From Macrostomum lignano (lineage: Eukaryota), in NCBI GenBank assembly GCA_002269645.1, contig NIVC01001580.1, positions 62,001 to 126,000 on the forward strand: a DNA stretch of 64,000 nucleotides. The letters are read 5' to 3'. Shown here piece after piece: positions 3,001 through 64,000 of the stretch; positions within the stretch are counted from its first letter, which is position 1, and the number at the start of each line of letters is the position of its first letter. The position numbers and the translations under genes were made by a program. Below the pieces are notes generated by a model that saw only the letters and a program-made list of their open reading frames with translations, searched no databases and was not told where the DNA came from.

Positions 3001-3532
3001 TGATTCTCACCTCGAAGGCTCTATTCCTGCTGTAGTTTACTAAACTGAACTGTTTGTCACTTAAGCTCAACATCGGGCTAAATTGAGAAGATATTAGTAG
3101 TTTACTGTTGAAACTTTTATTCCAAATATTTATTGAAGAAATTCTCTGAATTTCGATATTCCAGACGCTAGCGATTAGAGCGCAACTCAAATCTAATTAC
3201 TCGTAATATGCAAAGTGTGCCTGGTGAAAATGTTCAATCTGCTGCTAAATCTGCTGTATTTTCAAATGTAGACTCGATTACTAAAGAAATAAAGTTCTGT
3301 CCTGAATCAACTTTTTTCGATGCCCAGCTATAATGGGTCCAAATACGAACAAGTTTACATAAATAAATTCTATATTCTAAAATTTGTGAAACAGGTCACC
3401 GACAGTGACTTACGAGCGTATTGCCCAGTTTTAACTGAAAAACGGCAGTATTTTCTTTATGTTTTCAAAAATTCTCATCATCTTGGGTGGACTTGTTGAG
3501 TTCTACAGCTGCAAGGCAATGGCTTTACAATC

Positions 3533-21089: not shown

Positions 21090-23460
21090 TCAAATAACAA
21101 AGTCTTTACGGCGGCGTGAACCACTGCTGCAAAATCGATCAATCACCTGATCCGCAGTCTCTGCAAACTCAGGGTGGGTGTGCAACAGAGCCAGACTGAC
21201 AAGTCTGTCCTGCTGCATGGTAGAACGCAAATACGACTTCAAGCGTCTTCGGAAGCAAACATGTTAACTGGAGAAAATCATCATGCTGGGCCTGGTCCCC
21301 AAAGCGCTGCTGGAACTGAGACAGAATGTGCTGTAGGAATGGCTCGTACACATCAGCACGGAAGTGTTCCTCCGGCGTGTCTTCGCTAGCACCACGCCCT
21401 TGCTGACAGCCTCTACGACGAGGGATGCGCAGCTCTACGTCCGCTTCAGCTGCAGCTTCGGATGCTGACGACCAGATACTTTTGAAGGCAGTGCTGGCTT
21501 CTGCCTGCATCTTTTCCAGCGTGACACGCACGTTTTCGATGTGCTTGCTTGCTGTAAACAGATCGATACTAACTTTCTGAAGGAAGCTGGACAGAGGCCG
21601 GATTACTGCCATCACCTCGCCCATCACATGCAGCGCCACGATGAAGTTCGGCATTGTGCAGGCGGCCTTCAGCATCTGCGCATTGGCAGCAGTTCTTGGA
21701 TCGCAATCGGAGGCGGATTCGCAGAAATCAAGAAATTCTACAATTGATGCGAAAAGCTGCGAAAACACGAGCACGGCGTCATTCCGCTCGACCCAGCGAG
21801 TATCGCAGAGGGTTAGCAGTTTCCGCTGACGGCTGCTGCACGAGCCACTTGCGGTAACTCTTTGAAAGAGCTCGAGCCGCTTTGCCGATGAATTGACGAA
21901 GTTTGTTACTTCTCCTATAACTCCCATTGAGTTACGAATTGGGGGCAGTTGGCAGGCATGAACGAGTACAAGGTTTAGGCAGTGACTGGAGCAGTGAATG
22001 TAGTACGCTTCTGGACACTTCTGCCGAACATGTGCCTGAACTCCATTGAACTCACCCGGCATTGCAGCGGCTCCATCGTAGCCTTGACCTACGAGTAGGT
22101 GGTAGTTGATGCCCAACTTCTCGAGAAAACTAAACAATGCAGCGGCGAGTGCTGAGCCGGACTGATCGGTCACATGAACAAATCCGAGAAAATCTTCCCT
22201 GAGAGTGCAGTCAGCATCGACGTACCGAGCAGCAACTGACATCTGCTCCTTTTTTGAGATGTCACATGTCTCATCCATGAGTACAGAAAAACATTTTGCT
22301 GCATTGACTTTGGTGGCCAGAGTTTCCTGAATCACGCAACCAGCGGCTTCGAGGAGCTCGTTTTGAATTGTCTTGCTGATGTACGTTGCATTTGCTGCTG
22401 AATTCTTGAGATGTTTCTCCAACGCTTCGTCACCAGCATCAACACGAAACTGCAGTAAAGCGCGAAAGTTGCCGCTGCCTGAAACCATCGAATTGTCGTC
22501 ACTCGTGTCAGAGTTGGCACTTGAAAGCGGGCCATCGTCGCGGTGAGCGCAAACTGGAATGTTTTGTCTTCCACAGAGCAAAAGCGTCTTCACGATTGGC
22601 AGCAGTCGATTTCGATTCTCTGCTGCCTGTCGTTGCCGCGCTTCGTCCAGCTGTTCACCACGTCGCTGCGAGCTGCTGCTTGCTGCTTGAAGGTGGCCGC
22701 GCGTGTCACAGCATCTTGGTGATACGCTGTTGCAGCATGGGAGATGACATAGCCGTTTGCACCAAACAGATGGTCGTACATGTACCTACTCAAGGGCTTC
22801 GACACTAGGTTGCGGAGCTGCTGGTTGCGTACATCCCCAGACGCTGGCCCAAAAAGCGCACAGAACCGACAGAAAAGCCCAGATCGAGCTTCTGAGAAGG
22901 CTAGAAAGCTGTGCTTCTGCAGGTGCTCATGTCTTAGATAGCGCTTTTCAGCCTTGCCATTTAAAATGCGCGTGGAGTAAAGGCATTGAGTAGTTGGCTG
23001 ACGGCGACCAGGCAGAGTCAAGCAGCTTAAGACAAATGTGGTCATTCAGGTGTTCACTCAGAGGGCTACCAGCAACGTACAAACCGAAGTCGATCATGCA
23101 GATTCCCCTGCTAGTATCTGCAGCAGTAGAAGCATGGGCTCTGGCAGCAGGGACGCCGTATTCAGCAGCAGCAGGGGCGCTTGATTCAGCAGCAGCAGGG
23201 GCGCCAGATTCAGCAGCAGCAGGGGCGCCGGATTCAACAGCAGCAGGGGCGCCGGATTCAGCAGTAGCAGGGGCGCCGGAATCAACAGCAGCAGGGGCGC
23301 CGGATTCAGCAGTAGCAGGGGCGCCGGATTCAACAGCAGCAGGATGTCCAGAAGTTTTGCTCAGGAAAGTTCTAATTCCTACTGTGCTTCTGGCGCTTTC
23401 CTCGAGAAGACGAAGCTTTTTCTTGCGTCTATTTTCAACCCCGGAGGCTTTACGTTTCAT
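21090..23460 (-). pseudogene. hAT transposase (ZMYM1/P52rIPK-like, DUF4371 type) pseudogene
   Basis: TTF-type Zn finger (GLFCRFCALF), GNFRALLQFR, ISKTIQNELL, catalytic FSVLMDETCD, GQGYDGA, YIHCSSHCLNL, LCDTRW, and C-terminal RRLKSYLRSTMQQDRLVSLALLH ending at TGA 21090. Frameshifts at ~22980 and ~22660; an internal deletion with frameshift at ~21250 removes most of the dimerisation domain. Confidence 0.92.
23150..23345 (-). repeat. 24-bp coding repeat (xxESGAPA x8) in the transposase N-terminus
   Basis: Plus-strand unit CAGCAG(C/T)AG(C)AGGGGCGCCGGATT-like; translation AVESGAPA/TAESGAPA/AVDSGAPA etc. Confidence 0.9.
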
Positions 23461-33990: not shown

Positions 33991-36900
33991 ATGTCTGCCA
34001 TAGTGTCTTTTGTCTGTCTGGTTGTCTGCCTGTCTCTTTTCCTATACATTTCCCTGTGTCTGCCTGTGTCCCCCCTAGCTGTCATTGGCTCCCTGCAGTC
34101 CCTATCTAAGTGCATAAAAGTGCAGCAAGTGAGTAAACACGACTCCATCCGTCTGATCTTCAATTCTTCCCTAATCCCCTTCTCTCCCCCATCGAAGCCT
34201 TCAAAAATCCCCAAGGACTCCGATGCCAGTCTCTCCAGCTCTGCCTATGTATTAAATTTGCTAGCCAGTAGTTGCCTTAGGCTAGAAAAGCCATCTACCA
34301 TCTCCCGAAGGATCTTCTATTAAGTCTCCTTTGCCCGCCTCAGCCCCTTCACTCATTTACAGCTATTCTGTTCGTGAAGTCTAATTTTCAAAGCCAGGCC
34401 AGTCGCCCAGCACTCACCCACCCTCTTTTCCGTTCTGCAGATCCTCAATTTTTCATGCCTCTGCGCTCCTCTCAGAGTTTCTTTTCTGGCTTCACTCTTC
34501 CGTATAATTCCCAATTTCTGCAGCCAGTCTGCATGCCCGTCTGCTCGTCTGCCCACTCTGACGCTATAAAATCAGCAAGCCAGACGAACTTTTCTATAGT
34601 GTTGAATCTAGGGTTGTTTCTTTGCGTGTACTTTTTCTGCTTAGCGATCGGCTGGTAGACAGGATTAGTCATAGGGTTGCAGTGGAGTTTTTTTTGAGGG
34701 ACAACTTAAACCGTTTAGATTATGTTGGGTGTTTTCAGGGCATATTTTTTTCCAAGTTTCACGTACATGTATTACAATCTTCAGGGTCACTCCAAACCTG
34801 TGCCACAACCTTCAGAGTGCCTTCAAACCTGTGTCACAACCTTCAGAGTGCCTTCAAACCTGTGTCACAACCTTCAGAGTGCCTTCAAACCCGTGTCACA
34901 ACCTTCAGAGTGCCTTCAAACCTGTGTCACAACCTTCAGAGTGCCTTCAAACCTGTGTCACAACCTTCAGAGTGCCTTCAAACCTGTGTCACAACCTTCA
35001 GAGTGCCTTCAAACCTGTGCCACAACCTTCAGAGTGCCTTCAAACCTGTGTCACAACCTTCAGAGTGCCTTCAAACCTGTTTCACAACCTTCAGAGTGCC
35101 TTCAAAAAACCTATGTCACAACCTTCAGAGTGCCTCCAAACCTGTGCCACAACCTTCAGAGTGCCTCCAAACCTGTGTCACAACCTTCAGAGTGCCTTCA
35201 AACCTGTGTCACAACCTTCAGAGTGCCTCCAAACCTGTGCCACAACCTTCAGAGTGCCTTCAAACCTGTGTCACAACCTTCAGAGTGCCTTCAAACCTGT
35301 GTCACAACCTTCAGAGTGCCTTCAAACCCGTGTCACAGCCTTCAGGCTTCCTTCAGACCTGTTTCACAACCTTCAGAGTGCCTTCAAACCTGTGTCACAA
35401 CCTTCAGAGTGCCTTCAAACCTGTGTCACAACCTTCAGAGTGCCTCCAAACCTGTGCCACAACCTTCAGAGTGCCTTCAAACCTGTGTCACAACCTTCAG
35501 AGTGCCTTCAAACCTGTGCCACAACCTTCAGAGTGCCTTCAAACCTGTGTCACAACCTTCAGAGTGCCTTCAAACCTGTGTCACAACCTTCAGAGTGCCT
35601 TCAAACCTGTGTCACAACCTTCAGAGTGCCTTCAAACCTGTGTCACAACCTTCAGAGTGCCTTCAAACCTGTGTCACAACCTTCAGAGTGCCTTCAAACC
35701 TGTGTCACAACCTTCAGATGCCCTTCAAACCTGTGTCACAACCTTCAGATGCCCTTCAAACCTGTGTCACAACCTTCAGGTGAATGTGTACGGAGCCTCT
35801 ATCCTCCCCAATTTAATTGGCAGGTACAACATCGCCACCGGCACCCTGGAGGACCGGGCCATGATGAAGAACCTGGACTTTGAGTACGGCATATTCGATG
35901 AGGCGCACATGCTGAAGAATTGCCAGTCGAGGCGCTACAAAATGCTGATGAACTTTCGGGTGAAGCGGCGCATTCTGCTCACCGGCACCCCGCTGCAGAA
36001 CAACCTGGTTGAGCTGATGTCTCTGCTGTCCTTTGTCATTCCGGATGTCTTCAGTGCGTCTAGGCAGTGCGCTGACCTGCTCAAGAAGATGTTCAACCTC
36101 TTCTCGGTGAGTCTGCTGTGTGGCTTGAGATTGGAGCTCAGGTACTGGCGCAATGGGAGCTCGGAGAATTAGAATGGGATCTGACAATGGGGGAATCAGA
36201 ATCGGAGCTGAGAATGGGAGAATCTACATAGGAGAATCAGAATAGGAGAATCAGAATGGGAGAATCAGAATGGGAGAATCAGAATAGGAGAATCAGAATT
36301 GGAGAATCAGAATGGGAGAATCAGAATGGGAGAATCAGAATATGGTCATTTGCGGTCCCACCCCAGCGCTCGGCCACCACGGATGAGTCGTCTGCGGGCT
36401 CCGCCATGCCAGCGGCGGCAGCTGACCGGACCACCTACGAGATGGAGCGGATCCAGCACGCTAAGCGCCTGATGCGGCCCTTCTTTCTGCGCCGCACCAA
36501 AGCCCAGGTGCTCACGCAGCTGCCGGCCAAGACCGAGGAGGTCATGCTGGTCCCAATGACGGAGCGCCAGCGCCACGAGTACCAGGAACTCGTCGCCAGC
36601 CTTCGCCGACGTTTCGAAGGCGCCGGCGAGCGAGGCAGCAGCGGCGAGGTGGCGGTGAACTACATTCTGCAGCTGCGGAAGGCGGCCAACCACTGCCTGC
36701 TGCACAGGCGGGTGTACACTGACTCTCTGCTGCGCCAGATGGCCAGCAAGATGCTGAAGGACCCCGGCCATCTGCGCGCCAACGAGGACTACATCTACGA
36801 AGATCTGGCCGCGATGAATGACTTCGAGCTGCACAGGACCTGCCAGATGTACCCAGTGCTGGCTGAGCACCAGCTTGATGAGGCTGAGCACCTGCTGCTG

Positions 36901-39492
36901 TCTGGCAAGCTGGTAGCGCTAGACAGCCTGCTGCCAGAGCTCACAGCTGCCGGACATCGTGTGGCTCTGTTTAGCCAGTTTGTCATGATGCTGGACATTG
37001 TGCAGGCCTACCTGCAGCTGCGCGCAATTCGATTTCTGCGCGTTGACGGTTCCACGCCTGTGGGCGAACGGCAAGCGCTGCTGGACAGGTTTGCTGAGGA
37101 CTCCAGCATCCCCGTGTTCCTGCTCAGCACCCGGGCTGGCGGGCTGGGTGAGTTGTCTGAGTTTCTGTACCATGTCTGTCTGTACCTGTCTGTCTGTCTG
37201 TCTGTCTATCTGTATCTGTCTGTCTGTATCTGTCTGTCTGAGTGTCTGTATCTGTCTGTCTGGGTGTCTGTATCTGTCTGGTTGTCTGTATATGTCTGTC
37301 TGAGTGTCTGTATCTGTCTGTCTGAGTGTCTATCTGTCTGTCTGAGTATGTGTACCTGTCTGAGTGTCAGTATTTTTGTCTGGTTGTGTATGTCTACGCC
37401 TCACCATGCATGTGTCTGTGATCCTGCTTGCCTCTACCGCAGGAGCCGCAGCTCAGCAGTCTCTGGCGCCCTTTAGTCCGGTTTGATTATTAATAAAGTT
37501 AATCTGAGCGTAAAATGAACAGGATATGAAGATTAATTGATTTACCTATCAGAGCCCTCGGGGTTTATATGCTGTGCTTCTCCTTGGTTTATTGCAAAAT
37601 AGCTTACTTAGTATATTAACTGCCAAAACCCGCCGCCATCAATCTTAACTGCCCCGGATGTGTTTGCCTTCTTCTGAGGCCTGAATAGAAGAATTGCACA
37701 GGAAGTGGCCCCAAAATCCAGTACCAAATTAGGGAAAATATTTTAGCGCGTTGCCAGTTGGTCTGCGCAAGGTGACTTGTTTATTAGCCAAAATGTATAG
37801 AATTATATTTCATTAGAGGTTAGAAAGATATCTTTACTATAGAGTAGTCTACAGCTTCAGTATAGGGTAGTCTATGGCTTCAGTATAGGGTAGCTTATGG
37901 CTTCAGTATAGGGTAGTCTAGGCTTCAGTATAGGGTAGTCTATGGCTTCAGTATAGGGTAGTCTATGGCTTCAGTATAGGGTAGCCTATGGCTTTAGTAT
38001 AGGGTAGCTTATGGCTTCGGTATAGGGTAGTTTATGGCTTCAGTATAGGGTAGCTTATGGCTTCAGTATAGGGTAGTCTATGGCTTCAGTATAGGGTAGT
38101 CTATGGCTTCAGTATAGGGTAGTCTATGGCTTCAGTACATGGTAGTCTATGGCTTCAGTATAGGGTAGTCTATGGCTTCAGTACATGGTAGTCTATGGCT
38201 TCAGTATAGGGTTCAGGGTAGTAGTCTATGGCTTCAGTATAAGGTTCAGGGTAGTAGTCTATGGCTTCAGTATAAGATAGTAGTCTATGGCTCCAGTATA
38301 GGGCCGTCTGTGGCTTTAAAAACGAATATTCCTGACGTCAGAAAAGCTACAGAATATGGTTAGGCAACACGGTAGGAGCTAAAAGTTTAGCTGACTGCTG
38401 ACTAGTCTATCCATATTTTCATAACCTTCATACGATAGCAGAATTGCCAGCCCATAGCGCTCGCATCTCGTCAGTCTGAACTGATGCGGTTCTGCGCATT
38501 TCAGTTCCAAATAGAGGTCACAGCGAACCCAGGCCAAAAAGTCATTCCAGTTCAGTTCGGAGTCTGTCTGGCCATTTCTGCGCCAACAAATATTTCTGTA
38601 AAAGAACAGACCGTAAAGCTGCGGTGTTTGATTTTGCTTCGCTGTTCTGTCTCGGCTCTCGTGTCTCACTGTCTGTCTGTGCACTATTGCACTTTTCATA
38701 CTGCCAGCGCGTGCAATTTTACGTGGGTGGGGACAGTGTTGGAGAGAAGCGCTTGTCTGCAGGGCACAGGTGGGCATGCCTGAGAATCGTGATATAATTA
38801 ATGCGTCCCTTGCCCCCGATGCAGGCATCAACCTCACGGCAGCCGACACCGTCATCATCCACGACATTGACTTCAATCCGTACAACGACAAGCAGGCGGA
38901 GGACCGCTGCCACCGACTCGGCCAGGAGCGCCCAGTTCGAGTCATCCGCCTGCTGTCGGCGGACTCCGTTGAAGTCGGCGTGCATCGGATCGCCTGCGAG
39001 AAGCTCCGGCTAGAGAAGGACGTCGTGTCGGATGACGCTGCTCTAGGCGGCGGCGGCGGGAGCGGCAAAGCCGGCAGCGTCAGCGGCAACGGCAGCGAAG
39101 CGGCCGACCTGGAAGAGGACGCCGGCGATGCCGAAGTCGGCGGCGACGCCAACGGAGACGGTGGCGGCGGCCGGAAGCGCAGGCGGGCAGCAGCGGCGGT
39201 GAAGCGCGAGCCGCTGGTCGCCTCGCCGATCAAGAAACGCCGGCGCAGCGGCCTGACCTCCGCCGCTGAGGAGCCCGACGATGCCGCCACTGCCGCGGCG
39301 GATGCCGAGACGGCTTCAACTGCGAGCGCCACCACTGCAGCTGCCGCGACCGCCGGCTCCGCGCCATCGGGCGGAACCTCCTTGAAGTCTAGCGAGATGA
39401 TCAACCTGCTGTCGGAGTGCCTCGGCGTTGGCGGCCAGAAACCTGATGATGAAGCTGTGGAAGCTGAGGTTTCCGCTGCTGCTGCCGAGTGA
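25386..39492 (+). CDS. SMARCAD1: SWI/SNF-related chromatin remodeller SMARCAD1 (Fun30/Etl1), ~1343 aa
   Basis: Exons 25386-25653, 27763-27817, 27935-28474, 29375-29934, 31582-31757, 32420-32891, 33487-33715, 35824-36106, 36367-37147, 38825-39492 (4032 nt, all phases compatible). Two CUE-like domains ([20 protein letters not shown]; [26 protein letters not shown]). [86 protein letters not shown]. Confidence 0.95.
26578..26930 (-). mobile_element. tRNA-derived SINE, family B, in SMARCAD1 intron 1
   Basis: Reverse complement begins GGGGCCGTAGCCCAGTGGTAGCGC...GGCTCGATTCC (A and B boxes); body matches 16714-17055. Confidence 0.82.
28565..29230. repeat. 24-bp (GAGAGAGCGGAGGCACCGGTGG(A/G)T) then 25-bp variant minisatellite, SMARCAD1 intron 3
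   Basis: About 14-15 copies of the 24-mer, then GAGTGAGAGACACCGGTGGGTGTCG 25-mers, decaying to the right. Confidence 0.95.
30410..30980. repeat. 18/19-bp TGACTCA-containing minisatellite with an internal inversion, SMARCAD1 intron 4
   Basis: Units GTGACTCAGAGTGACCCA / GTGACTCAACATTGATCCA; ~30735-30795 is in reverse orientation. Confidence 0.9.
31845..32380. repeat. 21-bp minisatellite (GGTATCTAAGGACTCCGATTC-like, ~24 copies), SMARCAD1 intron 5
   Basis: 21-bp periodicity of GGTATCTAAG. Confidence 0.93.
32922..33070. repeat. 13-bp minisatellite (TTCACCCCTGAGA and variants), SMARCAD1 intron 6
   Basis: Direct reading. Confidence 0.88.
33725..34035. repeat. (TCTG)n microsatellite, SMARCAD1 intron 7
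   Basis: Direct reading; begins just after the donor site. Confidence 0.97.
34780..35779. repeat. 31-bp minisatellite (CCTTCAGAGTGCCTTCAAACCTGTGTCACAA, ~32 copies), SMARCAD1 intron 7
   Basis: 31-aa three-frame cycle in the ORF track corresponds to a 31-nt unit. Confidence 0.97.
36160..36342. repeat. 14-bp minisatellite (GGAGAATCAGAAT(G/A)), SMARCAD1 intron 8
   Basis: Direct reading, ~9-10 copies. Confidence 0.9.
37170..37400. repeat. Degenerate (TCTG/TGTA)n tract, SMARCAD1 intron 9
   Basis: Direct reading. Confidence 0.85.
37848..38302. repeat. 23-bp minisatellite (TATGGCTTCAGTATAGGGTAGTC, ~18 copies), SMARCAD1 intron 9
   Basis: 23-bp periodicity of TATAGGGTAG. Confidence 0.95.
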
Positions 39493-51562: not shown

Positions 51563-53980
51563 TCCAACGTGAGCCCCAAAAAGGTCGGCGTGAGCTCAAA
51601 ATTGAGTTTATCTCCATTAATGCAAAGGTTCACCTGGCTCTTTCCGTTGTTCCCATTTGGGGCCAGAGTGAAAGTGGTATAGCAGCATTTGCTGTTGCTA
51701 ATGGTGACCTTCCAGGTCCTGCACCAGCTGGTCACTGCTTCCAGAGCAGGTTGGAGCTCCTCGGCGCAGGTAGCCAGGGAGCGGGCCGTTGCAAGTAAGG
51801 CGGGCAAGCACCATGCACTCTGCGCACTTAGCGACACAGCTGGTCAAAGCGACCGGACGGCGACGTAGCACTCTTGTCTTTTTTCGGATCGGGATGATGA
51901 TGCCATTTCGCCAGCTGGTCGGTGTTTGCCCTTCGGTCCAGGTGCGGTTTATGAGTTTGAGGAGAATATTCTCAGCGGCCGCGGGGAGGCGTTTCAGCAT
52001 CTCGTTTGAGACGCCGTCGGCCCCCACAGACTTTCCCGACTTGAGGCGACGAACGGCTGCGCGGAGCTCGTCGATAGAGAAGAGGGCATCCGGGCCGTGA
52101 GCGGGGGTTCGTCTGTGACTGTCGTAGCCTCGTTGGCTTCGTAGCGGATTGAGGTGTCCTGGCGGCGTCTGGGGACTCGGCTCACTTCCGCGTACATCTG
52201 GCAGAAAAGCTCTGCCTTTTCCTTGTTAGTGCGGGCCGTACGCTCGGGGCGTTTTCAGAGGTCTGACTCAATGACCTTCAAGTCTAAATCAGGCGGGTCT
52301 ATAGTAATCGCTGCGTGGTCCGCAGTCTTGTGCCCTTCGCCTCTCATAGCGCAGGGTAGGCCAAAGATGTCGGAGCCTTGGTGGAAGTGCGCCGCCCTTT
52401 CCAGCAGGAAGGCTTTCTTTTCCTTGTTGAGGTAGTCTGAGGCATTATGTCGGGCCCGAGCGGCTGCGGAAAGATTCTCCTGGGTCGGATCTGCTTCGAC
52501 GGCCTGGCAAGCGGCTTTGGTCGCTTTCGTGGCATCCTCGCATGCGTCGTTCCAGAAAGGGAACCGGCGCATTGGCTTTCCTGAGCTGCGCGGGATGCTG
52601 TGTCGCGCGGCTGAGAGTATAGCCTCGGAGAGCCGAGTAGCCTCATCGTTAAGCGCGACCGTTTGTAGATCGGAGTCGACCCAGGCAGTCAAAATATCCC
52701 GGAAGACGGCCCAGTTTGCTTTTTTGTAGATCCAGCGTTTCTGTCCCTGGCGGGTTGGCGTCCGGCGTTGGAAGCTGGGATGTCGCAGAGGATGGGCAAG
52801 TGGTCGCTACCCCAGTCGGGGCCTGTTCTCCAGGAGTCGGTCAAAACGCCGGAGAGGGCGCTGCTGCAGATCGTCACATCCGGACTGCTGATGCGACCTG
52901 TGCTAGGGCACGTTCTCGTGTGGTTGGTTGAGTTGCAGATGGTCAGACAGTTGCGAGCAACCCATTCATCAACCGTTTGGCTCCTGGCGTCCTCGTCGAG
53001 GTGATGTTTCCAGCTGCCGTGGGCGTTGAAATCACCCCCGAGGATGGCTCTGCCGGTGACCGTCAGATTGTTAAAGGTTGGCTGCCAGGTATCGTCAGGG
53101 CGTTTGTAACTGGTGGGTGGGGCGTAAATGGAGGCCACCACGGTTGGCTGTTGTTCTTGTAGGCGGATGCGGCAGGCGACGACATCCAGGAGTTCGTGCT
53201 CGCGGTTGATCGATAACCTATCGTATTGGAAGTCTTCCCGAACGAGCACCAGGGCACCGCCACGCCCCGTGATTCTTTTTTCGGTTTTTTGGATTGGTTG
53301 GGGCTGACTAGCAGGCGTCGTGCTGGTAGGGCTCGCTCCGGGTTGGGCCGGCTGGTGGGAGTTGGGCCATGGCGTGAAACGGACGCTGCATGCGGTGCGG
53401 CCGCTGCGGCATCCGGGGCACGATTCTGCACGGAGGCTGGGGTATCTGAGGCGGCAGCGTGGGTTCTTGACGCGGCGCTGTTTCCCGGCAGTGCCAGCGG
53501 GGGGATCGGGCAGAGGTGGAGTAGGCTGGTCGGCAGTGTCAGTGACGTTAGCGCCGGTTTTAGGCCTGTCCAGGACGGCGCCGTCCGCTCTGGCTGCTAC
53601 CACATACCCTCTTGGTAGATTGTACTCTTCGTTATGCCGTAGCTTAGTTTCCTGAAGGAGGGCCACGGCAGGGCGTAGGAGAGTGAACCTGTGAGCTAAC
53701 TCCGTTTGGCGGCTTTTAATGCCGTTGCAGTTAAACTGCACCAGGAGTTCTGGGCCCAGCTCGGCTCTGTGCGATGCTGTGGCTTCTCGGCGCCTCCCAC
53801 GCCTCCGGCAGCGATGCGCTTTTTGGGCGTCGTCGTTTCCTCCGCGGAGGCGCATGACGGTTCGAAGGTTGTCGATGGCGCTGTCAGGTGACGCGTTGTT
53901 TCCAGCTTCCTCGCAGACTCGGTGGTTGTACGGTCCTTTAGAATGATCCAGAGACACCTCATGGAGGTGGGTCGTGGGTC

Positions 53981-53985
<5 letters not shown>
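51563..53985 (-). mobile_element. Decayed APE-RT non-LTR retrotransposon (I/Jockey/Ingi-type LINE)
   Basis: APE motifs QFNCNG, LLQET, GGALVLV, SIYAPP, GGDFNAH, SPDVT, GSDHLPI; linker YKKANW; RT start GADGVSNEML...W...IIPIRK...RPVALTSCVAK; RT end KCC...TFLGLTLD. Frameshifts at ~52750, ~52260 and ~52100. The RT core including YADD is deleted at ~51800. Confidence 0.92.
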
Positions 53986-54057
<72 letters not shown>

Positions 54058-56061
54058 CTGCTCAACCGGCGATCTCTGTTCCACTGGCCTCGGAGGAGCG
54101 GCATAGTGCAGCTACTAAAATGGGCTGCAATATGGAGCAATACGAACCGGAAACCGTCAGCTGGATGAATCAGTCAGTGAATCCGTGCGAGTCCATGTAC
54201 GAATTCGCCACTGGAAATCTGCCCCATGAAGACCTGTTCAAGCAAGCTGATGAGACAATGAGAAACCGACTGCACAAGCTGTTGACAAACTCAAGTAATG
54301 GAGTGCAGCAGCAGGACGAAATGATCTCTAATCCGACCAGAATTGCCAGTAGGCTGTACGGTAACTGCCTCAGCTGGTGGAACGGCTCTGACGCAGAAGC
54401 GATGCGTGGCGCGTTTCTCAGATCCGCTTTTAGCCAGCTGCTCAACAATCTGGAGACCGAATTTAGACATCGAGGCGAAGTTCTTGAGCTCGAGTCTCTG
54501 CTAGCGACTCTTGCCTGTTGTAGAGCCTGTTTCCACCTGTTGGCAGCCAGGTTCAAAGTACTTTCACACCGATTCGCCAATATTAGCGGACCGAAACCCA
54601 GAGCCATGAAGTCGTCAAAGATGATTAAATTTCTGCGATTCCTTCGGAAATGGAACGTAACGAATTCCGTTGAGCTGGAGGCGACGAATATTGTGCAAAA
54701 GCTGGCCTCATTGGATGAACTGTCGAAGTCGGATTCAGTGTAGCTTAAGCTTGAGAGCTGCATACAGATACAGGGCTGGGGATGAAAAAGAAAACCTGAT
54801 GTTTACAGCCAAGCAGCTTGAAAACTTTACTAATTGCATTTCGGCTGATACTCGAGTTTCATTTTCAAGGACAAATTTTTTGAAGAAGTGGATTCGAGTT
54901 ATGAAGGTGGCCGTTTGTTACTTGCAGCCTCTGTTCAGATTGCCTATTTAGGTGCATTCATAAATTTAACATCCGATGGTATGCTACGTAATGGGAATTT
55001 CAAGTCAATACTCGAAGCAACCAGCACTCAGATAATTTTGTTTGACTGGCTCTTCAAACTGTCGAAAATGATCCCGAGCTGGTTTATCAAGAATAATCAC
55101 TATTGTCTTGACGCTGCAAAAAAACTGCTCCGAGCAGTGGTATCCACAATGTACAATGTGGCATAATATAACTCAACTGATGCAGCCAATGTGGAGTCTC
55201 AGAATTGGTGGACGGAAAGCGATATTGATGAAGTTAGACAGCTGAGGTACACTAGCAACTTTTTCGAACTTTCGGATCAAGGAAGTTCGGCTGAATTCCT
55301 TCCAGCTCTAAAGAGTATCTACGCGCCTCTTGCTTGAACCTATATGCCGAAAGATTTGAAGCTTTGAAGCTGACGAGGAAAACAACTTTGGCGCTCTGAA
55401 TTTGATGAGCCTCGCTTTCCAGCTGAGAATCCGGTACTTTGCGGCCAGAAATACAGTACTGCTTTCTTTATGAGGAATCCTTTTGATGTTGAAGAAAAAT
55501 ATGCAAACACAAAACACGGGTTTAGAATTTTCTCCATCCCTCTGCGTCGGCTCACGCCACCAATATTTACATTAATTTTATTTACATCATTAATTGGGCC
55601 CGCGGCTGGTCAACTGCATTCAGCATACCGATTTGGCAAGCTGTGAAAGAAATAAACCAAATAAGTGAAAACAGATCTTTAATTGTAGAGCAGCAGAAAC
55701 TTCAAGCCCATTCCAGTTACCAAGCGTTCGTCAAGTGACCCCGCAGCAAATCTGCAACGTGCAGATACTGGTTTAGAGCATTCAATCAGCTGAGCAACTC
55801 CAGCCAACCGCAGATGAACTCTGCGCAGCCGAACCCGCTGACCAAAATCAACTCAATCGAATGTTTTTCACACTGATTGCGCAACTCTTTTACCAAACCG
55901 GGATGACAGAACAGATTAGCGAGCCTTTCAAACCGTACAATGCTCTCCAAGTCAAGTTTGACAGCGCCATGTTCAACAACAAGGAGTTCGCCAGAGCATT
56001 CGAATGCAGCGAATCGTGCACTTTAAATCGAAAGAATAAATGTACCTATTGGAAGAATTAA
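53961..56061 (+). pseudogene. Highly diverged M13 (neprilysin/ECE-like) peptidase pseudogene or non-catalytic homologue
   Basis: Poly-Leu signal/anchor; N-terminal MNQSVNPCESMYEFATGN (cf. MDxSVDPCxDFYxFACG); LRRLTPPIF; C-terminal MFFTLIAQ...NKEFARAFECSESCTLNRKNKCTYW. In-frame stops at 54741 and 55164 plus several frameshifts; no HExxH found. Confidence 0.72.
53983..54055. repeat. (CTG)~24 trinucleotide repeat
   Basis: Direct reading; poly-Leu on the plus strand, poly-Gln on the minus strand. Confidence 0.98.
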
Positions 56062-57665: not shown

Positions 57666-60435
57666 TTTCTCGTTTAAGCTGATAAATCTAAACCAACTTT
57701 AAGCGTTTATCAAAAACATTGGTTTGGCGAATTATATGTATATCTAGACTCTTTGGTACTTCTCGTGTGGTAAGTTAATCGGCAAAAATACTTCGTACAT
57801 TGCTTTTGCAGGGGCATACTCAAAAATTTTTATATAAGGGCCTCGTACATAAAGGGGCGCCAACATTCTGTAAGACCAGAATTGCGAGAGAAATACACAC
57901 TCAAAGGCCAAAGTTAGTCGATATATATATTTGTCACGCACGAAGTATTCATGTACATGTAATCGATATTGACGCAGGTAAATAAAAGCGTGCCCAACCC
58001 CCCCCCCAGCGCCGGCCAACCCCAAAACAGCCAACACAAAACTCACAATTCGAATGCTTGGTGTCTCGGTGGGCGCCCTGCTGTCTGTTGGTGGGCGCCC
58101 TGTCCCTTGTTGGTGCATGGGCACTCCTGTCTCTTAATAGTGGGTCCCCCTGTCTCTTAATAGTGGGTCCCCCTGTCTCTTAATAGTGGGTCCCCTGTCT
58201 CTTAGTGGGCGCCGCTGTCTCTTAGTGGGCGCCCCTGCCTCTTAGTGGCCGCCCCTGTCTCTTAGTGGGCGCCCCTGTCTCTTAGTGGCCGCCCCTGTCT
58301 CTTAGTGGCCGCCCCTGTCTCTTAGTGGCCGCCCCTGTCTCTTAGTGGCCGCCCCTGTCTCTTAGTGGGCGCCCCTGTCTCTTAGTGGGCGCCCCTGTCT
58401 CTTAGTGGCCGCCCCTGTCTCTTAGTGGGCGCCCCTGTCTCTTAGTGGGCGCCGCTGTCTCTTAGTGGGCGCCCCTGTCTCTTAGTAGTGGGCGCCCCTG
58501 TCCCTTGGGTATGGGCACTCCTGTCTCTTAATAGTGGGTCCCCCTGTCTCTTAATAGTGGGTCCCCTGTCTCTTAGTGGGCGCCCCTGTCTCTTAGTGGG
58601 CGCCCCTGTCTCTTAGTGGGCGCCCCTGTCTCTTAGTGGCCGCCCCTGTCTCTTAGTGGGCGCCCCTGTCTCTTAGTGGCCGCCCCTGTCTCTTAGTGGG
58701 CGCCCCTGTCTCTTAGTGGGCGCCGCTGTCTCTTAGTGGGCGCCCCTGCCTCTTAGTGGGCGCCCCTGCCTCTTAGTGGGCGCCCCTGTCTCTTAGTGGG
58801 CGCCCCTGTCTCTTGGTGGCCGCCCCTGTCTCTTAGTGGGCGCCCCTGTCTCTTAGTGGCCGCCCCTGTCTCTTAGTGGGCGCCCCTGTCTCTTAGTGGG
58901 CGCCCCTGTCTTTTAGTGGCCGCCCCTGTCTCTTAGTGGGCGCCCCTGTCTCTTAGTGGGCGCCGCTGTCTCTTAGTGGGCGCCCCTGCCTCTTAGTGGG
59001 CGCCCCTGCCTCTTAGTGGGCGCCCCTGTCTCTTAGTGGGCGCCCCTGTCTCTTGGTGGCCGCCCCTGTCTCTTAGTGGGCGCCCCTGTCTCTTGGTGGC
59101 CGCCCCTGTCTCTTAGTGGGCGCCCCTGTCTCTTAGTGGGCGCCCCTGTCTCTTGGTGGCCGCCCCTGTCTCTTAGTGGGCGCCCCTATCTCTTAGTGGG
59201 CGCCGCTGTCTCTTAGTGGGCGCCCCTGCCTCTTAGTGGGCGCCCCTGTCTCTTAGTGGGCGCCCCTGTCTCTTAGTGGGCGCCGCTGTCTCTTAGTGGG
59301 CGCCCCTGTCTCTTAGTAGTGGGCGCCCCTGTCCCTTGGTGTATGGGCACTCCTGTCTCTTAATAGTGGGTCCCCCTGTCTCTTAATAGTGGGTCCCCTG
59401 TCTCTTAGTGGGCGCCCCTGTCTCTTAGTGGGCGCCCCTGTCTCTTGGTGGCCGCCCCTGTCTCTTAGTGGGCGCCCCTGTCTCTTAGTGGGCGCCCCTG
59501 TCTCTTAGTGGGCGCCCCTGTCTCTTAGTGGCCGCCCCTGTCTCTTAGTGGGCGCCCCTGTCTCTTAGTGGGCGCCCCTGTCTCTTAGTGGCCGCCCCTG
59601 TCTCTTAGTGGGCGCCCCTGTCTCTTAGTGGGCGCCCCTGTCTCTTAGTGGCCGCCCCTGTCTCTTAGTGGGCGCCCCTGTCTCTTAGTGGGCGCCGCTG
59701 TCTCTTAGTGGGCGCCCCTGTCTCTTAGTAGTGGGCGCCCCTGTCCCTTGGGTATGGGCACTCCTGTCTCTTAGTAGTGGGCGCCCCTGTCCCTTGGTGT
59801 ATGGGCACTCCTGTCTCTTAATAGTGGGTCCCCCTGTCTCTTAATAGTGGGTCCCCCTGTCTCTTAATAGTGGGTCCCCCTGTCTCTTAATAGTGGGTCC
59901 CCCTGTCTCTTAATAGTGGGTCCCCCTGTCTCTTAATAGTGGGTCCCCCTGTCTCTTAATAGAGGGTCCCCCTGTCTCTTAATAGTGGGTCCCCCTGTCT
60001 CTTAATAGAGGGTCCCCCTGTCTCTTAATAGTGGGTCCCCCTGTCTCTTAATAGTGGGTCCCCCTGTCTCTTAATAGTGGGTCCCCCTGTCTTTTAATAG
60101 TGGGTCCCCCTGTCTCTTAGTGGGCGCCCCTGTCTCTTAGTGGCCGCCCCTGTCTCTTAGTGGCCGCCCCTGTCTCTTAGTGGGCGCCCCTGTCTCTTAG
60201 TGGCCGCCCCTGTCTCTTAGTGGGCGCCCCTGTCTCTTAGTGGGCGCCCCTGTCCCTTAGTGGGCGCCCCTGTCTCTTAGTGGGCACCCCTGTCTCTTAG
60301 TGGCTGCCCCTGTCTCTTAGTGGGCGCCCCTGTCTCTTAGTGGCCGCCCCTGTCTCTTAGTGGGCGCCCCTGTCTCTTAGTGGGCGCCGCTGTCTCTTAG
60401 TGGACCGTGGTGCCCCTTACTCTGCGTAAGCCACG
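57666..60435. mobile_element. Composite repeat copy 2: shared leader + 2.3-kb 20-bp/23-bp satellite array (58070-60405) + terminal hairpin
   Basis: Leader matches 48628-48741. Units GGGCGCCCCTGTCTCTTAGT (20 bp) and GGGTCCCCCTGTCTCTTAATAGT (23 bp). The array ends in ACCGTGG-TGCCC-CTTAC-TCTGC-GTAAG-CCACGGT. Confidence 0.85.
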
Positions 60436-60643: not shown

Positions 60644-63600
60644 ATGACGACTGCAGTCGGTCCGCCTGCAGCAGCGCAGTTACAGAATGAGAAGATCAGA
60701 GGAAGCCTGCTTGTTGAAGCCAAACGAGGCAATTTCGAAGTTTCCATCGAGCACATTAAGCAGGCTTTCAGTTTGGAAAGAGACGAGGAGGGTCGAACTG
60801 CGGCTCACTTTGCCGCCATGAAACCAGGAGGCTTCCGTTTGCTCGAGGAACTGTCTCGCAGTGCAGGACTTTCTTGTCTTGACATGGAAGATGAACACAA
60901 AGCAACTCCGCTTCATTACGCCACCGCAAGCTACTCGCTCGAGCAACTCAAGCAACTCTGGCCGAACGTGCTTCGTTTTTTATGCAGCTACCGGCTCAGA
61001 GACAAATACGGAAACACACTGGCCCATTGTGCCGCTCGGAACTGCAGCCACGAGGAGGTCATTCTAGAAATTTTACGAGCATCAGACGGCAACCAGCGGA
61101 CCAACTGGCCTGTCACAAGAGGATTTATGCTGTGGAAGAATAGCAAAAAACAGACCGTGCTTCACATAGCCATGGAGCACTGCAGTGTAGAGACCGCCAA
61201 GACTTTTCTAAATCATGCATTGGAATCTGATGAACTCGGTGCTCCTAAAAATCTGGTTGATGACGAGGGCGACACTCTCGCTCACTATGCAGCTAGGAAC
61301 CAGCACGTTCATTTGGATGCATATTCAGGGAAACAGCATGACAGCTTTTTCAATTCAGTGGCTCTGGCATGTTGGGGACAAAAGTGCTTGAATTGGAAGA
61401 ATGCCAACGGTCAGTCAGTGATGCAGGCTATCATTAAGTACCTGCCTGACAGCGCAGCAGAACAAATGGCTGACATAGTCTCACTGGAACTGTTTAGACC
61501 CGATAAGTCCGGTAACACGGTTCTGCATTACACTGGGCTGTATGGGAAGCCCAGGACTTTCATGAAAATTATCAGACGGATGATCATGACGCCAGTTGAA
61601 AATTTCGCTGAGAAAATAGCAGAAGATGCCAATAACGACGGCCAGACACCGATACATTTTGCTGCGCAGGACAAAGGCGTTATGGACTTTCTCAAAGAAA
61701 CAAGCGACATCAACTGGTACTCAAGCAAGCAGGACCGATTCGGCAGGAACATGCTGTTTTACGCATGCATGGGCTGGAATTTCGAGTTTCTTCTCGCTAC
61801 TGATGCACCTAAGAAGGACTTTCGAATTTGTGACTTGGAAGGAAACAGCCTACTTCATGCTGTCATGCTCGGCAGTGGAAATAGCGAGTCAATCAAGAAT
61901 TTCAATGCCGCTGTCCAAAAGCTGATCAACAACTTTGGCATCGATCAGAGAGCTGAGAACATTCTGGGACAAAACTGGCTTCAGTGCAGTCGCCTGAATG
62001 AAGACGTTCTTAAAGCCGTGCTATCATCGGCTTCAAAGCATGTCAAAGTGTCACTAAACTTGAACGCTTACAACTCGTCAGGTTTTCATATTCTTCATTT
62101 CTACTCTGGCAGGTATTCTCTAGAGAACATTGTTAACGTATTTAAGACCCAGTTGAACACAAAGTCGTACAAACTTGTAAGAGAGCAGGTCCTGAAAGGC
62201 CCCAGACTCGGCGCCACCTGCCTACACTTTGCTTGTCAAGCTGCTCACAAGAACAACATTGACTTTCTTTTGAAGAAGCGGCTAAGACTTACAGATTTAG
62301 ACAGCGCAGGGCTCACTTGCATTGACTATGCAGTTGAAGCCGGCAAGCTAGAAAGCCTTTTAGAGGCTCTCGAAATCCGCGTAGTTGACGCGCTTCGTTT
62401 TACTGACCCAATCCGATGGTCGCTAGAGCTACCTGACTATGACAGCGCATGTCATGTGCTGTCTGTGGCAGACAATGGATCAACGGTTTCCACTCTGGAG
62501 CAGCAGCTTCTTGTGGTATCAAAACAACAGATGCTTTTTGCAGACGCATTTCGCCAAGCTTGGTACCTAGACTCTTCTGTGGCTTTCAGAAGTGCACTCA
62601 GACTAAATCTTATTAGTCCAGACGCGGAAACAAAGTTCCTCGACTATCTGGTTGAGCAAAGTCGATCAAATCTGCTTCCAGGCTGTCAGCAAACAAATTC
62701 GCAGTCGGAGCTACAAATAGTTGATATCGCCCTAAAAGCTGGCAAGTTCGAGCTTCTACCAGATCTTGTCATCACGAGACAGTTTGACCTGATTCCTGCA
62801 TGCCTGCGTCTGATCATACAGCTGCAAAATCAGCGGGGTGAGACTTGCAGCGGATATGAGCAACTCGAAAACCTATATAAAAGAGTAACAAGAGTTCTCG
62901 TCGTTGTCGTCAACCATCTGTTTGAAAATGCTAGCTGGAGCGAGAAACAGATGCTATTCCGGTACATCCGGGGCAACATTTGTGACGACCAAGCTCAAGC
63001 TGGTGGGCCTCGTTTTCCTGGAGCGAACTGTAGTACTTGTGAAATTTACCACACCGCTACGAGTGTCACCATCATGGATCTGATTGAGGAGGCCGACTGC
63101 GACGAGCTTCTAGCAACAGATTGTCTTCATAGGATGACCAATGATGAATGGCGATCTTCATGCTATGAAAGGCGAGGCCAAGGAACAAGTTCCAGCTCCT
63201 GGATTTATAGCTTCGGACTTGCAATGTTGTTTTATGCGCGTCTAGCCGTCCATGCAGTGTTCCTACTTTACTTTTCGTGGTACACAACTGACTTTGCGCG
63301 GACTTTTAACTCATGGACAATTGACGCGATTTTAACAGCCTTTGCTTCGTTCTTCCTAATTCTACAAGTGATCGATGTTGTCATGGCTTTGATGCCTCAC
63401 ACCTGCCGCAGATGCGGGACCAGCGCCAGACCAAGAAGACTTGGAAGCTGTCCGCCGTACTGCAGAGACTTCTCTAACTTGATAGACTGGTGTGCTCTTA
63501 TTCTACTCTGGTTGGGAATAATTTGGAAGTGGTGCATCTTTCTCAGGCCCACTGATATCACCGTGTACGCTTGTCAAGCCACAATGTCGGCCTCATGTCT

Positions 63601-64000
63601 GTTGTTTGGACTTCGGCTAATTGCTTTCTTGAACTTTTCATCGACAGTAGGACCCATGATAGCTATGATGAAGTGCGTTGTTCTGAAAGACTTTCTGCCT
63701 TTTCTAAGCATCGTTGGAATTATTTTTTACTCATTCGGAGTTTTCTACTTCAACTTGTTGTTTCCTGTGACTACGTCAGTGCAGAGTGAGCTCAGTGCGA
63801 ACACCTACTGGTGGCGAGTGATTCTACAGATAATCACCCTGCCACTTGACCTGCTGTTTACAAAATTTGACCAGATCAACTTCGACACACCGCGTAGCGG
63901 CCTCGACCAATCTGTAGGATCAGTTGCCAACGCGATCGGGCTCTCCTGGTTTCAAAATCTACTCGTGTTTGTCTTTCTCAGCCTGGTAAACATCGTGATG
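60644..64000 (+). CDS. Intronless ankyrin-repeat TRP-type cation channel (>1119 aa, 3' end outside window)
   Basis: Manual translation from ATG 60644 gives 1119 codons without a stop. About 14 ankyrin-like repeats (e.g. EGRTAAHFAA, KATPLHYAT, GNTLAHCAA, KQTVLHIAM, GDTLAHYAA, GNTVLHY, GQTPIHFAA, GATCLHFAC) to ~62360. A TRPM-like linker/pre-S1 follows (TIMDLIEEADCDELLATDCLHRMTNDEW), then hydrophobic S1-S5, S4-S5 linker GPMIAMMKCVVLKDFLPFL, pore region and the start of S6. Confidence 0.88.
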   Translation, partial: MTTAVGPPAAAQLQNEKIRGSLLVEAKRGNFEVSIEHIKQAFSLERDEEGRTAAHFAAMKPGGFRLLEELSRSAGLSCLDMEDEHKATPLHYATASYSLEQLKQLWPNVLRFLCSYRLRDKYGNTLAHCAARNCSHEEVILEILRASDGNQRTNWPVTRGFMLWKNSKKQTVLHIAMEHCSVETAKTFLNHALESDELGAPKNLVDDEGDTLAHYAARNQHVHLDAYSGKQHDSFFNSVALACWGQKCLNWKNANGQSVMQAIIKYLPDSAAEQMADIVSLELFRPDKSGNTVLHYTGLYGKPRTFMKIIRRMIMTPVENFAEKIAEDANNDGQTPIHFAAQDKGVMDFLKETSDINWYSSKQDRFGRNMLFYACMGWNFEFLLATDAPKKDFRICDLEGNSLLHAVMLGSGNSESIKNFNAAVQKLINNFGIDQRAENILGQNWLQCSRLNEDVLKAVLSSASKHVKVSLNLNAYNSSGFHILHFYSGRYSLENIVNVFKTQLNTKSYKLVREQVLKGPRLGATCLHFACQAAHKNNIDFLLKKRLRLTDLDSAGLTCIDYAVEAGKLESLLEALEIRVVDALRFTDPIRWSLELPDYDSACHVLSVADNGSTVSTLEQQLLVVSKQQMLFADAFRQAWYLDSSVAFRSALRLNLISPDAETKFLDYLVEQSRSNLLPGCQQTNSQSELQIVDIALKAGKFELLPDLVITRQFDLIPACLRLIIQLQNQRGETCSGYEQLENLYKRVTRVLVVVVNHLFENASWSEKQMLFRYIRGNICDDQAQAGGPRFPGANCSTCEIYHTATSVTIMDLIEEADCDELLATDCLHRMTNDEWRSSCYERRGQGTSSSSWIYSFGLAMLFYARLAVHAVFLLYFSWYTTDFARTFNSWTIDAILTAFASFFLILQVIDVVMALMPHTCRRCGTSARPRRLGSCPPYCRDFSNLIDWCALILLWLGIIWKWCIFLRPTDITVYACQATMSASCLLFGLRLIAFLNFSSTVGPMIAMMKCVVLKDFLPFLSIVGIIFYSFGVFYFNLLFPVTTSVQSELSANTYWWRVILQIITLPLDLLFTKFDQINFDTPRSGLDQSVGSVANAIGLSWFQNLLVFVFLSLVNIVM

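Follow-up and report, generated by a model that had tools for sequence, protein, structure and literature searches.

Which kind of protein is encoded by the long open reading frame (ORF) that runs off the end of a 64,000-nucleotide stretch of the genome of the free-living flatworm Macrostomum lignano (positions 62,001 to 126,000 of contig NIVC01001580.1, assembly GCA_002269645.1; hereafter the window)? A first-pass annotation of this DNA had proposed a chimeric TRP channel, i.e. a TRPA-like array of ankyrin repeats on a TRPM-like linker and pore, encoded without introns. From the analyses presented here we conclude that the window gene belongs, as a divergent member, to a flatworm-specific subfamily of ankyrin-bearing channels that is related to TRPM and has so far not been described. 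It is likely to represent an intact flatworm channel gene that combines 14 ankyrin repeats with a TRPM-related core, and that descends from a TRPM-type ancestor in which ankyrin repeats took the place of the N-terminus or re-expanded from it.

The open reading frame has the layout of a TRP channel

Positions 60644-64000 of the forward strand translate as a single open frame of 1119 codons with zero stops, which continues past the window end; the chance of an accidental open frame of such length is about (61/64)^1119 = 5e-24. The frame starts with an ATG at 60644, an in-frame stop lies 29 codons 5' of this ATG, and the window covers the channel from S1 to mid-S6, with the TRP box located beyond it. 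All motifs quoted in the first-pass annotation were found in the translation at the expected places, i.e. FRQAWYLD at amino acids (aa) 636-643, IPACLRL at 717-723, YKRVTRVLVVVVNHLFE at 745-761 and TIMDLIEEADCDELLATDCLHRMTNDEW at 809-836, the cysteine motifs NCSTC at 795-799, CRRC at 921-924 and CPPYC at 936-940, and, in the S4-S5 linker and S5, GPMIAMM at 1003-1009, KDFLPFL at 1015-1021, SFGV at 1030-1033 and LLFP at 1038-1041. The parts of the gene, all on the forward strand, are as follows, together with the evidence for each.

60644-64000, forward: partial channel coding sequence, aa 1-1119, from the ATG start to the window end, which cuts inside S6
60776-62377, forward: ankyrin domain with 14 repeats, aa ~45-578, after two N-terminal helices at aa 9-38 (Pfam, AlphaFold, Foldseek, motifs)
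62381-63193, forward: helical linker, aa 580-850, counterpart of TRPM MHR4 and of the TRPC/TRPN linker helices (AlphaFold, hhalign to paralogue linkers)
63068-63151, forward: pre-S1 motif TIMDLIEEADCDELLATDCLHRMTNDEW, aa 809-836 (family alignment, hhalign)
63209-63289, forward: S1, aa ~856-882 (hydropathy; AlphaFold helix 280-303 of the 540-aa model; aligned with TRPM2 S1)
63226-63546, forward: in-frame GT...AG segment of 321 nt, aa 862-968, S1-S3, spliced out as an intron in the gene model of the near-identical protein P0001
63314-63391, forward: S2, aa ~891-916 (hydropathy, AlphaFold); Q908 and D911 align with the E and Q of the TRPM Ca2+ site
63392-63466, forward: cytoplasmic, Cys-rich S2-S3 loop (CRRC...CPPYC), with CPxY(F/C)xD conserved in the family and a low predicted local distance difference test (pLDDT) score
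63470-63541, forward: S3, aa ~943-966, aligned with TRPM2 'DLWNILD'; N945 and D948 lie at the N and D of the TRPM Ca2+ site
63569-63679, forward: S4 with the invariant R991, and S4-S5 linker VGPMIAMMKCV (family alignment, PDB matches)
63680-63763, forward: S5, aa ~1013-1040 (hydropathy, PDB match, AlphaFold)
63806-63871, forward: pore helix and putative filter LLFTKFD, aa 1055-1076 (AlphaFold helix 476-492; family alignment)
63929-64000, forward: first part of S6, aa ~1096-1119, truncated by the window end (hydropathy, AlphaFold)

In the N-terminal half, Pfam identified Ank_2 (E=3.4e-27) as well as Ank_4, Ank, Ank_3 and Ank_5, and across the whole window protein it matched ankyrin families alone, leaving Ion_trans, the TRPM domain and SLOG unmatched. 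The AlphaFold model of aa 1-619 (pLDDT 81.7, predicted template modelling score 0.73) is an ankyrin solenoid of 14 helix pairs, with which 14 'xxLHxA'-type motifs coincide. Pfam, model and motifs thus agree on the roughly 14 ankyrin repeats that had been proposed for this channel, and they also bear out the lack of SLOG/MHR1-2, since Pfam finds ankyrin families only in aa 1-580 and the model of this region is an ankyrin solenoid. The description of the array as TRPA-like, and of the protein as chimeric, did not hold. In a Foldseek search of the ankyrin model against the PDB, ankyrin-R and ankyrin-B were the best matches, NOMPC ranked 5 and Drosophila TRPA1 ranked 8, with no sign of a TRPA donor. 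NOMPC is also the best full-length TRP match of the window protein in the PDB, via its ankyrins. From these ranks, which reveal no specific likeness to TRPA, we rejected a TRPA-derived array; as modelled, the array is a generic solenoid.

The C-terminal half contains six hydrophobic segments within aa 856-1119, according to hydropathy. In the AlphaFold model of aa 580-1119, which was built from an alignment of 12 family members (pLDDT 66.6), the linker is all-helical and is followed by S1-S4, the S4-S5 helix, S5, the pore helix and the first part of S6. The topology of the TRP superfamily, i.e. six transmembrane helices of which the fifth and the sixth enclose a pore helix and a loop, is thus in place. 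The Ca2+-site motif in S2 is E-x-x-D in the family and Q-x-x-D in the window copy, and of the corresponding S3 residues the N is invariant and the D nearly invariant across the family; in the S4-S5 linker the same applies to G1003 (invariant) and P1004 (nearly invariant). LLFTKFD, a putative selectivity filter judging from the alignment, lies where TRPM has its 'FGQ/E' filter, the family consensus being LLFTNFD with K in place of N in the window copy. Pfam Ion_trans was found in six of the 12 family members, the window protein not being one of them.

The window gene belongs to an expanded flatworm family

The 540 non-ankyrin residues were compared exhaustively with 1.84 billion representative proteins by HMMER; 42 proteins matched, and for 26 of these the E-value was <=1e-30. 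We looked up 30 of the 42 matches, 27 of which carry a species name. All named matches are from M. lignano apart from three, namely distant ones from the flukes Opisthorchis and Dicrocoelium and one protein from a metagenome-assembled genome (MAG) filed as Kangiellaceae; two further matches sit on short environmental contigs (ENA). The M. lignano entries, which form about 30 paralogue clusters and amount to dozens of copies, are titled 'hypothetical' or 'ANK_REP_REGION domain-containing'. The matches are hence confined to flatworms and three environmental-DNA assemblies, in line with the earlier proposal of a lineage-specific, expanded family. A word-indexed protein search with the C-terminal 540 aa, the transmembrane alignment and the linker alignment yielded 0, 3 and 0 matches, respectively, and missed even the 99%-identical protein.

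Group A of the family consists of the window protein and long-ankyrin paralogues, which are 30-48% identical. Group B comprises a few divergent members (P0033, P0039, P0070), and group C/T comprises short-ankyrin channels, i.e. P0036, P0038 and P0040 of M. lignano (~1120 aa, ~5 repeats) and P0042 and P0069 of flukes.

Two entries call for comment. P0016 (1537 aa) lies on the 5.1-kb contig JAZBNS010000602.1 (GCA_036350755.1, positions 42-4966), which is filed as a Kangiellaceae bacterium MAG. This contig carries a canonical spliceosomal intron (GTAAGT...TTTGCAG) at a position conserved in the family, followed by an exon with WW...Y..FLKYQA. It looks as if DNA of a eukaryote, probably a flatworm, had been mis-binned with that of a bacterium. 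P0034 of Opisthorchis viverrini (1906 aa) contains two full channel units, with transmembrane matches at 802-982 and 1470-1662, and probably represents two tandem duplicates joined by annotation.

The channel core is most similar to TRPM

A profile of the 12 A-group sequences, covering the linker to the TRP domain, was compared with all PDB chains. TRPM channels took all of the best 60 places, led by zebrafish TRPM2 (E=4.9e-37, 130 bits) and Nematostella TRPM2-like (1.5e-35), followed by TRPM1, 3, 4, 7, 5 and 8, and the alignment spans from just before S1 to beyond the TRP box. NOMPC, TRPC, TRPA and TRPV were outside these best 60 and hence below 72 bits, compared with 72-130 bits for TRPM.

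For direct comparison we used nine transmembrane references (NOMPC, TRPC6, TRPC3, TRPA1, TRPM7, TRPM8, two TRPM2 and bear TRPM4), the identity of which was checked by PDB search: NOMPC was taken from a PDB alignment, TRPC6 was identical in the alignment, and TRPC3, TRPA1, TRPM7 and TRPM8 were accepted on full-length matches of about 2.2 bits per residue, their alignments unseen. The scores (in bits) obtained with hidden Markov models (HMMs) were as follows.

A-group HMM: TRPM 72-119; C/T group 125-135; NOMPC 60; TRPC 12-14; TRPA1 13
C/T-group HMM: TRPM 120-162; A group 84-125 (3 tested); NOMPC 69; TRPC 49-52; TRPA1 2
TRPM HMM (5 references): C/T group 143-184; A group 61-113; NOMPC 74; TRPC 63-67; TRPA1 8

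Foldseek, applied to the model of the linker and transmembrane region, placed TRPM8, TRPM4, TRPM2 and TRPM3 at ranks 1-9, with E-values from 1.2e-5, TM-scores of 0.33-0.40 and 437-594 aligned columns; the first TRPC followed at rank 10 and the first TRPV at rank 36, and neither NOMPC nor TRPA1 was among the top 50. The TRPM-like pore and core that had been suggested at first are therefore supported in agreement by the PDB profile, by Foldseek and by the HMM scores (TRPM above NOMPC and far above TRPC and TRPA1), and the channel core is closest to TRPM.

For the linker the picture is less direct. The A-group linker profile did not match any PDB chain, and Pfam matched neither the family linker nor anything outside the ankyrins in the window protein. 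However, two short-ankyrin paralogues, P0036 and P0038, exceed the curated threshold of PF25508 ('TRPM2-like domain') between the ankyrins and S1 (28-29 bits versus 27), and P0036 aligns in one stretch with Nematostella TRPM2 571-1132. Since hhalign links the A-group linker to that of these PF25508-bearing paralogues (A group against C/T group: probability 95.3%, E=2.2e-8, 197 columns including the pre-S1 motif), the linker is homologous to the TRPM-type linker by transitivity; the Foldseek alignments to TRPM8 and TRPM4 also extend across it. The MHR4-like nature of the linker thus stands as a relationship through paralogues, but not as a direct match to PDB or Pfam. Within the pre-S1 segment, hhalign aligns TIMDLIEEADCDELLATDCLHRMTNDEW of the window protein with SFITMPSVQSALDMEW of P0036; the family consensus is ADCxDLFATDCIxxLxxxxW, in which C827 is invariant and T825 and W836 are nearly invariant. 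The motif resembles the FxAHxxCQxxLxxxW of TRPC, TRPM and TRPN, a likeness that serves as a lead only.

Trees were calculated by neighbour joining from Scoredist distances over 274-292 trimmed columns, with 300 bootstraps and the nine references. The A group was monophyletic in 100% of the bootstraps, and so was the pair of the window protein and P0043. The five TRPM references, including the cnidarian sequence and TRPM7, formed a clade at 97-99% that excluded all flatworm ankyrin channels, and TRPC grouped with NOMPC at 74-93%. The flatworm channels grouped with NOMPC in 1-2% of the bootstraps, and their transmembrane region did not fall robustly inside TRPA, TRPN or TRPC. Neighbour joining on long branches is weak evidence, and the position outside crown TRPM may be a long-branch artefact; on these sequences, the tie of the family to TRPM in the trees appears only moderate.

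Comparison with known channels

Compared with TRPM2 (zebrafish 6drj, Nematostella 6co7), the family profile aligns over about 330 residues, which include S1-S6, the S4-S5 linker, the TRP helix and LPPP. The family further shares with TRPM the S6 motif 'VNLLIA(L/M)F', the TRP helix W(K/R)xxR/YxxLxEY, the Ca2+-site positions in S2 and S3, the best Foldseek matches and a linker related via paralogues to PF25508. It differs from TRPM in the filter, which is FT(N/K)FD instead of FG(Q/E), and in its position outside crown TRPM in the neighbour-joining trees; the window protein has 14 ankyrins in place of SLOG/MHR1-2, and the NUDT9H domain of TRPM2 was not seen in P0001 by eye.

With NOMPC of the TRPN family (5vkq), the window protein has in common a long ankyrin solenoid, linker helices, six transmembrane helices and a TRP helix, and its ankyrin model matches the NOMPC array; however, NOMPC has 29 repeats instead of 14, its transmembrane similarity (60 bits) is below that of TRPM, and it stands apart in the trees. 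TRPA1 is similar in ankyrin count (~16-17 versus 14), but its transmembrane region (13 bits) shows no kinship closer than that of the superfamily, and whereas P0001 has a W-R-R TRP box, the TRPA type is a TRP-like helix without the W-K/R box. TRPC differs by having about 4 ankyrins and an EWKFAR core, and its PF08344 (TRP_2) is unmatched in the window protein and the family. TRPS (soromelastatin, ced-11-like) is likewise a TRPM-related lineage outside crown TRPM, but has SLOG and Nudix and no ankyrins, and was compared with the family by its described architecture alone (PMC7306681). Among lophotrochozoans, TRPS has been reported in molluscs only (PMC7306681). The best single-sequence PDB match of the window protein is Chlamydomonas TRP1 (6pw4, E=1.3e-3), from S4 to S5; this match extends over about 60 residues only, and crTRP1 is without an ankyrin array.

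A near-identical protein extends the channel to its stop

The part of the channel that lies past the window end can be read from P0001 (1175 aa), a protein 99% identical to the window protein, with 14 substitutions and one 107-residue deletion. P0001 adds 147 residues (aa 1120-1266 of the joined protein) up to a stop, containing the S6 end LYLLIARFSS, the TRP helix GLWRRSYFELLREHQ and a WWxxxxYPxEY motif, with about 110 residues after the TRP helix. The TRP helix and box, GLWRRSYFELLREHQ in P0001 and IWRxxYFEMLREY plus LPPP in all paralogues, align with IWKFQRYELIKEY of TRPM2. As read from P0001 beyond the window, a TRP box therefore follows S6, as in the TRP superfamily. The S6 Asn is present in 11 of the 12 family members and in the TRPM, TRPC and TRPA1 references, not in NOMPC, and is Tyr in P0001. 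In the C-terminus of P0001 no NUDT9H or Nudix was seen, which was judged by eye only, with no domain search run. The downstream breakage that the first-pass annotation had allowed for was not encountered, since S6, TRP box and C-terminus are intact in P0001 through to the stop.

The 107-residue deletion arises where the P0001 gene model removes 63226-63546 as an intron. Because this segment matches the S1-S3 region kept by all paralogues, the unspliced frame is the one that encodes a channel; the P0001 model either mispredicts an intron here or reflects one inside the exon, which would yield a non-channel isoform. Of the positions conserved in the family (agreement in 10 or all of the other 11 members of the A group, n=95), 17 differ in the window protein, within the range of 3-17 among paralogues, and the changes at these sites are mostly conservative (L/F/V/M, F/Y, E to Q). 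The window copy is fast-evolving, with no visible decay.

Ankyrins and channel are encoded in one long exon

The gene structure of the paralogues explains why the window gene lacks introns. P0043, the nearest paralogue, has aa 1-1204 in one 3612-nt exon followed by a 944-nt intron; P0013 has aa 1-1591 in one exon, and P0007 has aa 1-1580 in one exon, followed by a 2.5-kb intron. In all three, the first exon measures 3.6-4.8 kb, and the intron lies directly 3' of the TRP domain and 5' of WWxxxxYPxEY; the environmental contig of P0016 has the same layout. The window shows no intron because it stops before this conserved 3' position. The earlier suggestion that the intronless frame reflects retroposition or recent expansion thus has to be given up, as a giant 5' exon with a conserved 3' intron is the norm of the family. 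Retroposition was ruled out on the same grounds. In the window gene and in four paralogues, P0043, P0013 and P0007 among them, ankyrins and channel lie within one exon, and so they do on the independent P0016 contig. With the ankyrin-channel junction inside a single exon, and since the long 5' exon is the family norm, we also ruled out that the junction is an artefact of gene-model fusion. The 2.5-kb intron of P0007 holds a separately called ferritin gene (L004, 6684-7199).

Origin of the family and alternative explanations

Could the frame be a retrocopy or a decaying pseudogene, open by chance? Its 3.36 kb without an intron, its standing as the most divergent copy with odd residues in filter and S6, and the satellite array and transposon remains in its flanks would fit such a view. 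However, a long intronless 5' exon with a conserved 3' intron is normal for the family, 1119 codons are open, conserved sites show largely conservative substitutions, in a number within the paralogue range, and the near-identical P0001 is open through to its stop, which makes this explanation highly improbable. We give equally little credence to the view that the protein is a divergent TRPN channel of the NOMPC type with a shortened ankyrin spring. The overall layout of long ankyrins, linker helices, six transmembrane helices and TRP helix is common to both, and both the full-length PDB comparison and rank 5 for the ankyrin model point to NOMPC, but they do so via the ankyrins. The channel part tells otherwise: NOMPC is outside the top 60 of the family profile (below 72 bits, versus 72-130 for TRPM) and outside the Foldseek top 50 for the linker and transmembrane model, it scores 60 bits with the A-group HMM versus 72-119 for TRPM, and it groups with the flatworm channels in 1-2% of the bootstraps but with TRPC in 74-93%.

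An unlikely, yet more serious, competitor is the view that the family is an old TRP lineage in its own right, the sister of TRPM or of TRPM plus TRPS, which kept ancestral ankyrins, never gained SLOG and has survivors in flatworms only. It would account for the monophyly of crown TRPM (Nematostella TRPM2-like, TRPM7, TRPM2, TRPM4, TRPM8) at 97-99% with the flatworm ankyrin channels outside. Degenerate ankyrin repeats have been reported in MHR3/4 (PMC13143021), and ankyrin loss has been placed before the TRPM-TRPS split (PMC7306681), both of which are in favour of such a lineage. However, the search of the whole library returned flatworms and three environmental-DNA assemblies only, so that losses in every other phylum would be required; neighbour joining draws long branches to the base; and P0036 scores 80-118 bits against TRPM, which is comparable to the 116 bits of TRPM7 against TRPM8.

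Several observations weigh against an intact, TRPM-derived channel. The window copy has Lys in the putative filter and Tyr for Asn in S6, and it lacks LPPP after the TRP box; P0001 has no obvious C-terminal coiled coil and misses the long heptad-rich tail of P0003 and P0013. Taken alone, the window protein is weakly similar to solved TRP channels, over S3-S5 only (Chlamydomonas TRP1 at the E-value given above, TRPM2 at E~0.02), it is unmatched by Pfam Ion_trans, and with the TRPM HMM it is the most divergent member, its 60.9 bits lying under the 74 of NOMPC. In the trees, which drew their nine references from TRPM, TRPC, TRPN and TRPA, all flatworm channels joined TRPM in 38-41% of the bootstraps (full sets), and the C/T group joined TRPM in 71% (reduced set). 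That ankyrins replaced MHR1-3 in a TRPM channel, as the first-pass annotation had put it, is thus plausible but unproven, given that the family falls outside crown TRPM in these trees. We nevertheless consider it most likely that a TRPM-type channel of an ancestral flatworm gave rise to the family. The N-terminus of this channel would have been replaced by, or re-expanded into, ankyrins, and rapid evolution and multiplication of the family would have followed.

Predicted properties of the channel

The ORF probably represents a large 5' exon encoding the pore-forming subunit of a tetrameric TRP cation channel, in which two helices, 14 ankyrins, the MHR4-type linker, pre-S1, S1-S4, the GP-containing S4-S5 linker, S5, the pore helix, the FT(K/N)FD loop and S6 would follow each other in this order. 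For ion selectivity, Ca2+ dependence, stimulus and tissue, we infer the following by analogy with known channels and from the size of the family. Q908, D911, N945 and D948 may act as oxygen ligands at the S2 and S3 positions that bind Ca2+ in TRPM2, 4, 5 and 8; because these ligands and the Glu of the TRP helix are kept, gating by cytosolic Ca2+ or dependence on it is likely. Similarly, S1-S4 should be coupled to the gate in the usual way, given that the family retains the Arg in S4, the GP in the S4-S5 linker and the TRP helix. The acidic residue in the FT(N/K)FD loop suggests a cation pore, which would presumably be Ca2+-modulated and non-selective. As in TRPN and TRPA, the ankyrin solenoid may work as a spring, tether or binding platform in the cytoplasm, and it would be coupled to the gate via the linker and the TRP helix. 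The channels are probably used in sensing, and it is the large lineage-specific expansion that suggests this use.

Surroundings of the channel gene

The remaining 60 kb of the window do not contain a second family member, i.e. there is no tandem array in this part. The following elements were observed there.

58138-60403: 20-bp satellite TAGTGGGCGCCCCTGTCTCT, ~109 copies with 89% matches, which stops ~240 bp 5' of the start codon
56323-56883: 28-bp array of 19.5 copies, farther 5' of the channel gene than the 20-bp satellite
52689-54140, reverse: LINE (long interspersed nuclear element) endonuclease ORF
34622-37476, forward: SNF2-family helicase gene, two large ORFs with a short repeat-bearing gap between them
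21169-22593, reverse: hAT-type transposase remnant (DUF4371)

Outside the channel gene, the content of the window with its hAT and LINE remains, SNF2 helicase and satellites fits an animal genome.

Significance for flatworm TRP channels

Ankyrins have been reported to be absent from TRPM and TRPS, and their loss, together with the gain of SLOG, has been dated before the TRPM-TRPS split; the Lophotrochozoa pooled in that study were annelids, nemerteans, brachiopods, phoronids and molluscs, with flatworms not included (PMC7306681). A survey of TRPM from 2026 leaves flatworms unmentioned (PMC13143021), and our literature search found no paper describing ankyrin-bearing TRPM-like channels in flatworms. 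M. lignano also has a canonical TRPM_PZQ, which is functional when expressed heterologously (PMC9910428), so that the ankyrin family comes on top of ordinary TRPM. The sequences themselves were already public as 'uncharacterized', and the novelty is their recognition and classification.

The combination of a TRPM-type core with a long ankyrin array would represent either a secondary domain swap, which would mean that an ankyrin module can drive a TRPM gating core, or a survivor from before the gain of SLOG, and either origin renders the role of the N-terminal domain in gating testable. An expansion as large as that in Macrostomum, a flatworm that is tractable in the laboratory, suggests a sensory repertoire specific to this lineage. 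The relatives in flukes are of interest because TRPM channels of flatworms have been proven as targets of drugs (PMC9910428, PMC10868838). It is a real, if still tentative, possibility that these channels constitute an unnamed TRP subfamily, a flatworm-confined, ankyrin-bearing sister of TRPM/TRPS with dozens of receptor-like channels in Macrostomum and one or a few short-ankyrin copies in flukes. If so, the short-ankyrin channels of flukes could be a new anthelmintic target beside TRPM_PZQ.

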